This document shows, piece after piece, positions 8,779 to 14,041 of a stretch of 64,000 bases of DNA. Positions within the stretch are counted from its first letter, which is position 1; the number at the start of each line of letters is the position of its first letter. A program made the translations under genes and the position numbers. The notes under the pieces are model-generated. The model searched no databases. It saw nothing but the letters and a program-made list of their open reading frames with translations, and was not told where the DNA came from. This DNA is from Zygnema circumcarinatum SAG 698-1b (lineage: Eukaryota > Plantae > Zygnematophyceae), in NCBI GenBank assembly GCA_037447605.1, contig CM074804.1, positions 124,001-188,000 of the forward strand, written 5' to 3'.

Positions 8779-11700
8779 TTAACCTCAGCAACCCGTCTTG
8801 AGCGGGCTGCGTCCTGAACGTCTGGTCACCTTCATGGCGGTGAACTCCTCGCTCATGGTGGGGTGGATGCCCACCGTAATATCGAAGTGCTCCTTCGTGG
8901 CTCCCAGCTTTAAGGCCACGGCATAGCCCTGCAGACCCGAGTCCCTCCAAGTACTCAGTTTTTCCCTTTCTCTCCCAACATCCTCAGTCTGCATGGGCGT
9001 CACGGCTTCAGATATTTGGCTTAAAGCTCTGAGGTCCCTACGGCTATTGAAAATGCGAAGGGCCGTGGGTCGTAATGCCACATCCTTCTGAGGCTCTTTT
9101 CTACGCTGAAGGTTTGGACAGACTGTTGGATGCAATCTTTCCAGGACAGACCCTCATGACGCCGGTGAAGCATGTGAGAATTGATTCTCAGTATCCCTGG
9201 AACATACGAACATAAGGAAACGATAGCGTACCTGTGTGATTTCACCGGCATGCGGTGACAAAACATGAAGTCCCACGACTCGCTCGTTATCGAGCTTGTT
9301 GCAAATAAGCTGCAAGAAAGCTCGTTGTGGAATGGTCAAAGTTGAACAGCAGGAATGAAGGCGGAAAGGAGAGCCGCAATGACGTGAAATAGAGAACAGA
9401 AAGCGAAGGCAAAGTTAGATGAATCTCCACACAGCCTCGAAGTCCCGCTTATGATGCAAATCACAAGACCTAGTTCTCTTAAGAACTTCCCAAAACGTAC
9501 AAACACGACAACAAAAGAAAAAACACATAATTTCTAACTGTTACACCTTTGAGAAACGTGCCGTATAAAGCACCAGTTAGCCGTTTCGGGAACAGGTCCA
9601 CCTCATGATCGAGCTGCATGCATACCTTAGCATAGCAGGCATTGTCCTCCCTCTCCTGGACGCCATTGTGCTCGTTGTGGTTCACTACCCACTCTAACGG
9701 TTTGAAATGCGTCAAATACACCTGCATGGACCAACACTTTGCCGGCAAAGCTAAGCGTAACCTTTTGCAGGGCTGAAAGACTATAGAGACATCTACGACT
9801 GCTTAAGATTTTCAACTTTTCAGAGTAAAATTTGAACTCTCGAAGGTTTCCAAACTTTTGGCCTTTTTGGTTTTTTTAGCATTCAAACGGCTGTGAAGCT
9901 AACTTTGAGATGTTTGCTGAGAAACTATGTTTACGAAATTACACGTCAGGGTGTGCTAAGTCCCACTCAATCATCTCGATGTGACCTTCTCAAATTGAGG
10001 AACGGGAAGATACCCTACACCCCTCTCTCACCTCAATGTTATCGGGTCCAAAGGTCTCTGCAGCATACTCCTCGGACATGCCCACGCAGCCATACTCCAA
10101 AGGTGTGAAAACCGTAGTCGGAACCTGCAGAACTCCACGAATCCCATTTCCCTTTATGCCACTCTCCACTTCACACTTTCACAAATTCCCACTTTTTCTC
10201 TCTCTTCCTGCTATTCTCTGTTGCCAACATCCTCATCCACACAACCTATCGCCCTTTCCCGCTACCTGTCATCCTGCCCTTCTTCCTCTTCCCCACTCGC
10301 ATCCTTCCTTCGCCCCACGTCTTCTCCCCTTTCCCCATTCTCAATTGTGTGAACCTCCAGCTTCCGCCCCCCCTCCCCCCATCGTCCCCCAACCCAACTT
10401 CATCCCACTCCTTCGCAGTCTCTCCAACCCCCCTCCCCTCCCTCCCCTCCCTCCCCCTCCTCCCCTCCCTCCCCNNNNNNNNNNTCCCTCCCTCCCTTCC
10501 CCCCCTCCCCCGAAGCTGCCAGGAAGGAGCGGCAATGTACACACCAGGTTGTAGTCCATGAGAGTGGTCGAGCCCCCATAGAGGCGGCGGGCGAGCAGCA
10601 CGCCCGCCTGGATGGCGACAGGTGTCAGCTCTTGGCGCTGGTCCAAAACATCTCCCACCGCGTAAATATGCTCCACATTCGTCTGCTCCACCCTCCAAAA
10701 TCAACTTGTATTCAATTTTTTTAAAGCGCCATAAAACCACAAATTTGTAAACCCGGTTAGGGATAGGCGTAGGGTTAGAGTTGGTTTAGAATTAGGGTTA
10801 GGGTTAGGGTTAAGGTTAGGGGTAGGATCAGGGTTAGGGTTAGGGTTAAGGTCGAACATCCGAAAAGGAGGCAACCTAAGACTCTTTCACTCGTTGCATG
10901 TTTGAAGAAAGACTCGCCCTACTAAGCTCTGGGTCCCTCAAATTTTCTTAAAACCTTAAAAGAAAACTGCAAGCCTGAACATTTAAACCTCGCGAAAGAA
11001 CATTCGACCCGGGAACAATGAAATTTTTAAAGTCTGAAACAAACCCCAAAATCCTGAACATTTGAAATGCGCTAGTGTGCTTTGGCCACAATCCTCTCCA
11101 GCATTTCCAGAGACCGCGGTGTAAGAAATGACCTGCTCGTTCACTGCTACCAGTTTTCCGTTCGTTTCCTTCACCATCACGCCTGCTCCCTCTAAATTCT
11201 GCACCTCATGTCCACCAACATGTCCAGTTACTACACATGAACAAATACAGGATGTTTGTTTTTTAAACAGAAAAAAGATAGCGGAAATCGAGCGATATTC
11301 AAAGGAGCATTTCCAGTGTAAAGAGCACAACGAAAATGCTCAGAGTTCATGGAATTTACTGCATTTTTGGAATGTTTAGGGCCTCAAAAACGAACCAGAT
11401 CTTTTGTCTGCGCCTCCCGACCGACTGCCAGCACAACAGTATCGAAAATATCCGACATTTCCACCGAAGTGAGAATGTTCATAAATGTCACTTTCACCTG
11501 CAATAGCAGGCAGGAGGTCATAAATAAAAGCCAAAATTACTTGACAAAAGCGGAGCGAGCAGAAATACGACAAATCGACCCTTCTCCCATCTCTCCTCCT
11601 CCCCCTTCAATGTTCTCAACTCTCTCTAATGTGGGGTGCCTCTCTAGGCAATTTGAAAGGTACAGATGACATCTTGCACACATAGACCCCTACGCTTTTC

Positions 11701-14041
11701 TGACCTCTAAGTAGTGGGAGTAGCGCGTCCATACTGTACCTTTTCATCCTCTGTGCGCTCGAATTTTGTTGGCACCGCGGGCCGTATAAATTTGGTTCCA
11801 TGCCGTTCCATGTACTGCCCGATTTTCTCCGCAATATCCTGCAGCCTCGAGCAGAACAAAAATGGAAATCAGTGTCCCCTCAGAATGAAAAGATCCATGA
11901 GGAATTCACCCAATGTGAAGGAAAACAGATGAATATCCCCTTCATTCACAAAAAAAAACCTATCTTAATGGCAAGGTTTCGATGCCGCAAGGATGAGCTG
12001 ACTCTTGCCAGGTGTTCACTCCCTGACAGATTGACTCCTGCCAGATGTCACCCCCTGACAGGTTACTCCTGACAGGTGTCATTCCCTGACAGGCTGACTC
12101 CTGCCACGTGTCGCCCTCTGACAGGCCGCCGCAGGAGGAGCGCACTGTACCTGATCGAAGCCGCGCAGGAGGATGGAGCGCGCCATGACGGTGACGTCAC
12201 ATGCGAGCCCCGCCAGCATGCCCGCCGTCTCCAGGGCGATGTAGCTCGCGCCGACGCACAGCGTTCTGCCAGGTGGCGTGGGCCACGAGAACACGTCATC
12301 ACTGCCAGGGGCACATGTGCCATCGTCAGTTACGATTCAGTTTCGTTGGTCCAGTTGGCGCTCACGGCAGTCAGGTCGTGTTCCAAAGAGAGCACAACAT
12401 GAATAATGAAAAGGGAGGCAATACCTCGTGATGCAGTATTCTTTATCCCCTGGAATGCCTAAGTAAGAGGGTCGGCCCCCCACCGCAATCACAAAGCGTC
12501 TTGATGTAATGGCTTTAACCTGTACTCCATGGACCATACATAAAAAACATGGAGTGATCGTCAATAGTAGAAACTGTCTTTAAGCAGACCTCCACCTTGC
12601 AAAAGATTACAAAATTTCCTCACCCAGGATGCCGAGCCCTAACAATCCTGAGCTTCAGACAGCAGATTCCTTTGAAATAACGTAGCTACTAAAAAACCTT
12701 ATAAGTGTAGATTCTAAGAAAGGTCTCACCTTCCCGCGACGATCGATGCATTCCAGTGTATGAGGATCCTTAAAACGGCCCATTGCATTAATATATTGCA
12801 CATTTGCATCTCGAAGTGCCACTCGGTAACCCCAATTTAGAGAGCCAATATACTCCTGCACCGAAGCGACCAGCTTGGACCTGCATACACCCCATTTGTA
12901 CCCTATCCTGTCTAAAACAAAAGCAAATAACATAGTTGCAATTCATCCTGATTATGAGAGCGGGACGGGTTGACCTCTTCCAGTCAACAGATGAACACGA
13001 CATTGAAAAAAATCATTCTCAAAATGAAGAGTTTCCAGGCCAAGAAAGAGAAAGAAGTTGCACCAGTCGTGGCCTTCTACAGTGAAGCGCCATCCAAACT
13101 CGCGCGCATCGCTGAAAGTTTCACCCACAAGGGCCGCCTGATGCATCAGCTTCTTTGGAATGCATCCCACATTCACACATGTGCCTGCAGAAGGAGAAAA
13201 GATGAGGAAGAGGGCCAGAAAGCGAGGGAGAGGAAAGCTGAGGGAGATGGACGCTGCTTCTTGCCACTTTTGTGGTGCGGAGCACTTGGAACTCAGTTTG
13301 TAAGTTTTTTGCATTTGCTTAGAGTCGGAGGGAGAGTGAGGGCCGGAGGGAGTGGGAGAGGGGCGCGGGGAGTGGTAGAGAGAGAGGGAGACGAGGGAAA
13401 AGGAAAAGGGGTGGGAGGGAGAGGGGAGGGAGATGGATGCAGATGCTGGCCTTGCTATTTCTGACTGATCGGCATTGAACGATACCATGAAAGAACCCAA
13501 AAAAAAAAAGGGGGCAAGCGACTGCTCGTTCTTACCCCCAAGGCCCCATTGAGTCCCTCGCGGAGAGGGCTTTACGTAGTCGAGGAGGGCTACCTGGAAG
13601 AGAGCGAAAATGAAATCCACCAGGAAAAAGGAGATGAGAATTCTTTAAATTAGTTAGTGGGGGACCTAACTGCAATCAACCGACCGATTCTCTGTTTCGG
13701 TGTGACCAGTCATTCGTCACGTACGACAAATTCCTCCTCTTCTCGTCTCAATGGACTGCTTGACCTTAACATTGTGCCCACAGACATCTCTAAGTGTATT
13801 AAAAAATGCATAACAGGAGAACGTCAATGTGGTATCCCAAGAAGACTTGTCCAGATGAATTTTTCCAGACGACGTTTCCAAAATGGTTTCAATAAGTAGA
13901 TAAATTAAAGTCTGGACGAACCTTCTTCCCAAACTTGGCAGCCTCCTTGGAGAAGGCGAGTCCCCCCGACCCCCCTCCCACAACAACGACGTCAAAGTCA
14001 AAGCCATGGTCGCTCTCCGGAAGCCTCCGATCCACCGCCAT
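8779..14041 (-). CDS. TXNRD: High-Mr (animal-type) selenoprotein thioredoxin reductase, 505 aa, 14 exons: 14041-13922, 13593-13536, 13184-13064, 12880-12730, 12519-12425, 12301-12151, 11838-11740, 11497-11396, 11198-11133, 10682-10545, 10124-10032, 9721-9626, 9309-9232, 8928-8779; Sec codon at 8787-8785
   Basis: All exon phases are consistent (1518 nt including stop). Motifs: [61 protein letters not shown], and the terminus GGT TGC TGA GGT TAA (Gly-Cys-Sec-Gly-stop). Confidence 0.96.
10757..10851. repeat. Degenerate (TTAGGG)n interstitial telomere-like repeat in a TrxR intron
   Basis: Read directly: TTAGGGTTAGGGTTAGGGTTAAGGTTAGGGG... Confidence 0.8.
11999..12125. repeat. Minisatellite of four 31-33-bp units (TGACTCCTGCCAGATGTCACCCCCTGACAGG-like) in a TrxR intron
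   Basis: Four degenerate tandem copies visible. Confidence 0.85.

Follow-up and report, generated by a model that had tools for sequence, protein, structure and literature searches.

Algae hold the closest described counterparts of the gene treated here: TXNRD, the high-molecular-weight (high-Mr) thioredoxin reductase (TrxR), was recorded in 36 of 36 algal genomes, mainly in a form that contains selenocysteine (Sec), and is one of the four selenoproteins with the widest distribution across algae (Jiang et al. 2020; PMC7539508). A search of 38 genomes together with the One Thousand Plants (1KP) transcriptomes found the full Sec machinery and a few selenoproteins in every streptophyte algal class, including Mesotaenium and Spirogloea, and placed the loss of Sec in the embryophyte ancestor (Liang et al. 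2019; PMC6627142); according to a 2026 review, tRNA-Sec was kept in streptophyte algae and lost at terrestrialization (PMC13578239). Here we describe a TrxR gene on the minus strand of a 64,000-nucleotide stretch of contig CM074804.1 (positions 124,001 to 188,000), referred to below as the window and numbered from its first letter. The locus is an intact, expressed nuclear gene for a high-Mr, animal-type (TXNRD/TGR), cytosolic-type TrxR, and it looks single-copy. The explanation that best accounts for the evidence as a whole, and which we regard as highly probable, is that a UGA codon near its 3' end is read as Sec, the penultimate residue of an expressed animal-type enzyme in a zygnematophyte-like alga.

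How much of this is new? The family is well known and the gene an ordinary representative of it, in a lineage whose selenoproteins are already documented. A preceding sequence-only reading of this DNA had proposed that Sec decoding survived close to land plants, which would help to date its loss; the proposal is correct, yet not new, because Liang et al. (2019; PMC6627142), Jiang et al. (2020) and the 2026 review (PMC13578239) precede it. The finding thus adds a well-documented example to a picture drawn in publications from 2019-2020 onward, and raises no fresh question. Liang et al. (2019) left open whether Desmidiales genomes retain the machinery, and found none in the Closterium lunula transcriptome (PMC6627142).

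A thioredoxin reductase gene with a penultimate UGA

Six-frame translation and splice joining resolve a TrxR gene of 14 coding exons spanning 14041-8779, all of whose introns are of the GT..AG type and whose coding segments carry clear pyridine-nucleotide disulfide oxidoreductase motifs. The joined coding sequence (CDS) measures 1518 nt, comprising 503 sense codons followed by TGA (8787-8785), GGT and TAA, and its 3' end reads GGT TGC TGA GGT TAA. In the numbering of this 14-exon model (505 amino acids), the FAD-binding GxGxxG motif appears as GGGSGG at residues 22-27, the redox-active disulfide CVNVGC at residues 62-67 in exon 3, GASYIALE at residue 199, HPTMSEE at residue 478 and GC-U-G at residues 502-505; the region of the His-Glu dyad corresponds in alignments to GIHPTCSETF in TGR and to GIHPVCAEIF in rat TrxR1. 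When ten exons were scanned one by one against NCBIfam, the top-scoring family for eight of them was TIGR01438 (thioredoxin and glutathione reductase), the matches being colinear and summing to about 365 bits from separate exon scans, to be read beside a curated whole-protein cut-off of 475.85 bits; exons 7 and 8 gave no NCBIfam match when scanned singly. Glutathione reductase models scored well below TIGR01438 on every exon. Exon 1 matches positions 1-27 of the profile, exon 3 positions 48-81 (54 bits) and exon 6 scores 67.5 bits, while exon 14 spans positions 437-483 of 485, so that the UGA and the Gly codon after it occupy the last two positions. In rat TrxR1 (499 residues; PDB 3EAN, 1H6V) this exon aligns to residues 451-497, and in the 598-residue TGRs, which are its strongest PDB matches, to residues 550-596; since it ends two residues before the end of the chain, UGA-GGU falls on Sec498-Gly499 of rat TrxR1.

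Full-length identity of the spliced protein rises from 58-60% to rat TXNRD1 and animal TGRs, through 64-66% to chlorophyte TrxRs (Gonium, Chlamydomonas schloesseri, Pyramimonas) and 67-70% to Mesotaenium, Spirogloea and Closterium sp. NIES-53 (70% to the last), to 75% for the EukProt transcript P0155, its nearest relative. P0155, which served as a full-length proxy for the spliced protein in the family and structure comparison, finds its best full-length matches in rat and human TrxR1. When the last exon was searched with phmmer against 1.84 billion representatives, 744 matches were obtained, and among the best 150 of these most end at ...GC, the usual signature of Sec-containing TrxRs that have been cut at the UGA; two read ...GCWG, with the TGA called as Trp. 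The assignment to a high-Mr TrxR with a CVNVGC centre and the spelling of the GGT TGC TGA GGT TAA end, both made in the sequence-only reading, are therefore borne out, and the proposed Gly-Cys-Sec-Gly terminus agrees with the alignment of the last exon to TrxR1 and with the orthologues described below.

The gene is transcribed and spliced as predicted. Seven public runs under one organism label contain 54-64% of the sampled words of 8300-14200, and contigs of four runs, from four different studies, were aligned to this interval. All 13 coding introns appear in the four runs as contig joints at the exact predicted bases and at a depth of 86-487, with CT..AC ends that equal GT..AG on the minus strand, and contigs retaining introns reach a depth of 6-26 only. 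Across 8300-14200, the TGA included, the contigs of the four runs report no alternative letters, and TGA is therefore the form present in transcripts; both the exon joints and the TGA, for which the earlier reading had looked to RNA data, are thus found there. The N run within the gene (10475-10484) is confined to intron 10 (10125-10544), leaving no N in the CDS, and the 10124/10545 junction that removes this gap-bearing intron is bridged by transcripts (joint 10122->10543, cut +2; 94 letters on the shorter side), so that the CDS is continuous over the assembly gap.

From the 5' side, and on the minus strand throughout, exon 1 (13922-14052, coding from 14041 in the 14-exon model) holds an internal ATG at 14041 and the FAD-binding GGGSGG, exon 3 (13064-13184) the redox-active disulfide and exon 6 (12151-12301) the NADPH-binding GASYIALE. 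Exons 4 (12730-12880), 5 (12425-12519) and 11 (10032-10124) are defined by the gene model, the contigs and the family profile, and exons 2 (13536-13593), 7 (11740-11838), 8 (11396-11497), 9 (11133-11198) and 13 (9232-9309) by the gene model and spliced contigs. The acceptor of exon 10 (10545-10682) lies 9 nt downstream of the start of the open frame, with the joint 10682->11133 present in four runs; intron 10, which follows it, combines the assembly gap with CT-rich low-complexity sequence and is spliced out in four runs. Exon 12 (9626-9721) encodes the green-lineage insertion NHxEHNG..RED, and exon 14 (8779-8928) encodes the interface domain with the His-Glu dyad (HPTMSEE), the KTGC-U-G end and the stop codon, the predicted Sec codon at 8785-8787 being followed by GGT for Gly at 8784-8782 and TAA at 8781-8779.

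The 5' end of the gene calls for a revision. In all four runs loose contig ends occur at 14053, and the letters that continue them equal 14353-14382, which implies an additional GT..AG intron of 299 nt (14351-14053) and a 5' exon, here exon 0 (14352-14595, its upstream limit being approximate, with at least 244 nt seen in contigs). Besides 5' untranslated region (UTR), this exon contains what is likely the start codon, an ATG at 14361-14359 in the context GCC-ATG-G and followed by GGA ACG G, which in the joined transcript lies in frame and prepends MGTVAEA to the Met of the 14-exon model. Comparable N-termini are found in relatives, namely MGTVADG (P0195), MGTVVGD (Mesotaenium, P0194) and MGTAAGD (Spirogloea, P0196). 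Because the 5' exon is present in contigs and its in-frame ATG gives a conserved MGTV-type start, the product is probably a protein of 512 amino acids encoded by 15 exons. Of the earlier claim of 14 in-phase exons and 505 amino acids, the 14 coding exons and the 13 introns between them are confirmed in contigs, whereas the exon count and the length probably fall short and the start codon was probably misplaced. The MGT(V/A) start is conserved among zygnematophyte TrxRs (14359-14361 in the window; P0195, P0194, P0196), and its Gly2 could be an N-myristoylation site; the Glu at residue 6 here fits that consensus poorly.

The SECIS element and the predicted decoding of the UGA

Three orthologous loci, L001 (Closterium sp. 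NIES-53, genomic), L002 (genomic) and L004 (a transcript contig), the latter two from other members of the clade, all end GGC TGC TGA GGY TAR, and the differences beyond the UGA are synonymous, affecting Gly (GGT/GGC) and the stop codon (TAA/TAG). That a Gly codon and a stop codon are kept past the UGA despite synonymous change suggests selection on translation beyond it.

Some 217 nt past the UGA lies a type-2 Sec insertion sequence (SECIS) element (8511-8577, minus strand), with AUGA at 8568-8565 and the GA of UGAG at 8522-8521. Because the exon 14 contig runs unbroken through 8300 and farther, this region lies within the 3' UTR; contigs over exon 14 and the SECIS extend about 1.7 kb past 8300, which points either to an unusually long 3' UTR or to a convergent transcript next to it that overlaps. 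The element is laid out as AUGA, C, a 10-bp helix II, GU, AA, G, a 4-bp mini-stem (UACC/GGUA) with a 6-nt loop, U, 10 bp and UGAG, the two strands of helix II being GACGUGUUUC and GGAACAGGUC with one G.G mismatch. A pattern scan (AUGA, AA 10-14 nt on, GA, and at least 9 of 10 pairs adjoining the core) over both strands of the window, 128 kb in all, gave 8577-8511 as its single match, where block shuffles expect 0.18 per 128 kb. The three orthologues each carry an AUGA...AA...GA hairpin 200-290 nt downstream; the element of L004 has segment lengths identical to those of the window and a different helix sequence, and that of L002 is matched by Rfam SECIS_1 (RF00031) with 30.2 bits (E 0.008). In the four-species alignment (window, L001, L002, L004), pairs were counted over helix II and the mini-stem, 14 in total, with helix I left out for want of a convincing alignment across the four. 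Seven of the ten helix II pairs are changed on both sides, 87% of cells are paired as against 31-50% with slid partners, and the covariation score is 0.619 as against 0.284 in shuffles (0 of 500 reach the observed value) and at most 0.20 with slid partners; RNAalifold independently predicts the same helix. By this comparative evidence 8511-8577 is a SECIS element conserved via compensatory changes.

Several points weigh against reading the UGA as Sec. With 17.7 bits (E 5.5 when 2 kb are searched), the Rfam SECIS_1 match at 8577-8511 stays under the gathering score of 35; helix I, made of 3 bp and an internal loop, is weak; and the region has no unusual fold energy (z = -0.62). The expectation of 0.18 flatters the candidate, since the scan criteria were picked after it had been seen. 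No tRNA, and hence no tRNA-Sec, is present in the 64-kb window. The run data are assembler contigs, which are prone to dropping rare variants, and the runs are only guessed to be RNA, though the dominance of spliced forms points to RNA. Sec insertion into the protein is a prediction. As the Rfam score and the fold energy did not settle the matter, the argument for the SECIS rests on the pattern scan and on covariation among orthologues. The L004 element, despite sharing the architecture, is absent from the SECIS_1 match listing, and the low score in the window may come from an Rfam model built largely from metazoan sequences.

If the UGA is indeed decoded, the following course can be envisaged. 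The mRNA spliced from 15 exons would be translated, most likely from the ATG in the 5' exon, up to the UGA at 8787-8785, where the type-2 SECIS in the 3' UTR would recruit SBP2, eEFSec and Sec-tRNA to allow its decoding as Sec; one Gly would then be added and synthesis would stop at UAA. If the enzyme works as rat and human TrxR1 do, electrons would pass from NADPH to FAD and on to the CVNVGC disulfide of one subunit; the Cys-Sec selenenylsulfide, carried on the flexible C-terminal tail of its partner, would take them over with the help of the His-Glu dyad and hand them to thioredoxin. Both the dimeric mechanism and the thioredoxin substrate are presumed from this analogy.

Alternative explanations and the origin of the locus

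Could the UGA instead be an ordinary stop codon, such that the gene makes a selenium-free TrxR-like protein ending in Lys-Thr-Gly-Cys and the downstream hairpin is fortuitous? Automated annotation does read all orthologues as ending there, the SECIS of the window falls under the Rfam threshold, and mammals are known to make a truncated TrxR when selenium is scarce. We nonetheless consider a plain stop very improbable, given that Gly and a stop codon follow the UGA in four species despite the GGT/GGC and TAA/TAG changes, that the SECIS is kept in place and in architecture through compensatory changes, and that a lone C-terminal Cys is not known to support thioredoxin reduction in the TrxR family. 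Even less credence can be given to the notion that the product is a Sec-containing glutathione reductase or a TGR-type enzyme and not a TrxR proper, to which the breadth of TIGR01438, taking in both TrxR and TGR, and the prominence of TGRs among the PDB matches of the last exon might lend some colour. No glutaredoxin domain is found N-terminally, where the protein starts some 20 residues ahead of GGGSGG even when the extra exon is counted; full-length comparison of P0155, the nearest relative, gives rat and human TrxR1 as best matches; and the glutathione reductase models are far lower on every exon.

A UGA read as Sec would also be uninformative about streptophytes if the locus were a contaminant or a mis-scaffolded piece of chlorophyte, animal or protist origin, as might be suspected from the N gaps in the scaffold and from the foreign look that a high-Mr TrxR, which is not known from land plants, may have beside plant-type genes. 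A quick maximum-likelihood tree of 35 TrxRs (IQ-TREE) speaks to the contrary: it groups the window protein with P0155, Closterium NIES-53, Mesotaenium and Spirogloea (98 in the Shimodaira-Hasegawa-like approximate likelihood ratio test, SH-aLRT), and this Zygnematophyceae clade is nested among green-lineage sequences (97), separate from those of animals and amoebozoans. At least 12 of 13 exon boundaries coincide with the ends of high-scoring segment pairs on the Closterium NIES-53 locus (tblastn with the window protein), indicating shared intron positions, and about 8 kb from the TrxR gene lies an exon of an ANT1-like amino-acid transporter (21613-22479, plus strand; Aa_trans, 1e-49), whose best named matches are Mesotaenium (62%), Closterium (57-58%), and Marchantia and other bryophytes as well as lycophytes (53-55%). 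Moreover, the spliced transcript occurs at high depth in four independent studies under the same organism label, and the gap, lying inside an intron, is bridged by transcripts. The tree, the intron positions shared with Closterium and the neighbouring transporter gene together make contamination or mis-scaffolding so unlikely that it hardly needs to be reckoned with. As judged from these comparisons, the genome is that of a streptophyte alga of zygnematophycean affinity, while identities to Closterium of 70% for the TrxR and 57-58% for the transporter are too low to call it Closterium-like; the streptophyte host that had been deduced from plant-type neighbours is thereby upheld, and the phylogeny named as a check at that time agrees.

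The surroundings of the gene include a Ty1/copia element, which sits between the TrxR gene and the ANT1-like gene. Just upstream of the TrxR 5' exon, at 15615-18410 on the plus strand, a 931-aa open frame carries Ty1/copia gag, pre-integrase, integrase core and Pol beta-barrel; in Closterium NIES-53, too, an RVT_2 gene lies directly upstream of the orthologue, whose annotated protein includes a fused copia fragment. A phosphoglycerate-kinase-like exon lies at 24056-24613 (plus strand). Within the TrxR gene, intron 9 contains interstitial telomere-like TTAGGG, TTAGGGG and TTAAGG units at 10770-10850, and long low-complexity polypyrimidine tracts of the CCCT/CCTC type occur at 10360-10520, 14260-14320 and 14550-14620, the one flanking the assembly gap having probably caused it.

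Relation to known thioredoxin reductases

The main value of the present analysis lies in the correction of gene models. All four public zygnematophyte models of the enzyme, from Closterium sp. NIES-53, Closterium NIES-64, Mesotaenium and Spirogloea, are annotated to ...GC and lose the catalytic Sec together with the final Gly, just as the sequence-only reading had expected of automated annotation, and two of them have false N-terminal fusions; in the window, the true start seemingly lies in an unrecognised 5' exon. The fusions concern L001 (CASDOC010219366.1) and P0270 (Closterium NIES-64), which are joined to a copia fragment and to leucine-rich repeats, respectively, and both stop at the Sec codon. 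The Chara braunii model P0272 (CBR_g40754) spans 182 kb, ends in ...KPACV and not in ...GC(U)G, and shows CGGLA and TSVNVGC where the usual motifs would stand; either the model is poor or the copy has diverged or is decaying. On a broader scale, one may entertain, as a tentative and rather doubtful idea, that the TrxR belongs to a zygnematophyte selenoproteome of at least six families, above the one to three selenoproteins counted in Mesotaenium and Spirogloea and the none to two in desmid transcriptomes (PMC6627142). Were such a rich selenoproteome real, Sec use would have been undiminished in the algae nearest to land plants, and its loss on the embryophyte stem abrupt.

Among described enzymes, the chlorophyte TXNRDs, including TR1 of Chlamydomonas reinhardtii (Novoselov et al. 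2002, as cited in PMC6627142), are likewise green-algal Sec-containing high-Mr TrxRs with the green-lineage insertion, whereas the enzyme of the window stands on the streptophyte side, in the Zygnematophyceae clade. Its orthologues within that class, in Closterium sp. NIES-53, Closterium NIES-64, Mesotaenium endlicherianum (ME000365S06155) and Spirogloea muscicola (SM000207S06195), are 67-70% identical to it and come from species other than that of the window. The Closterium NIES-53 gene has the same GC-UGA-Gly-stop ending, SECIS and intron positions, and the Mesotaenium (P0194) and Spirogloea (P0196) sequences, known here from protein models, stop at ...GC likewise. Mammalian TXNRD1 (rat, PDB 3EAN and 1H6V; human, 2J3N) belongs to the same family, with the same domain order and about 60% full-length identity, and shares with the algal enzyme GGGSGG, CVNVGC, the His-Glu dyad, the C-terminal Gly-Cys-Sec-Gly specified via UGA and a SECIS in the 3' UTR. 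Unlike TXNRD1, the algal protein has the green-lineage insertion in its interface domain and a short MGTV N-terminus, and its SECIS is of type 2, with a 4-bp mini-stem and a poor score against Rfam SECIS_1. Land plants possess the low-Mr thioredoxin reductases NTRA, NTRB and NTRC, which carry out NADPH-dependent thioredoxin reduction. These do the same cellular job as the algal high-Mr TrxR, but they form a different, smaller class without the interface domain, the C-terminal redox centre or selenium. A member of the zygnematophytes, the sister lineage of land plants, would thus retain a selenium-dependent, animal-type thioredoxin system that embryophytes have replaced with low-Mr NTRs.

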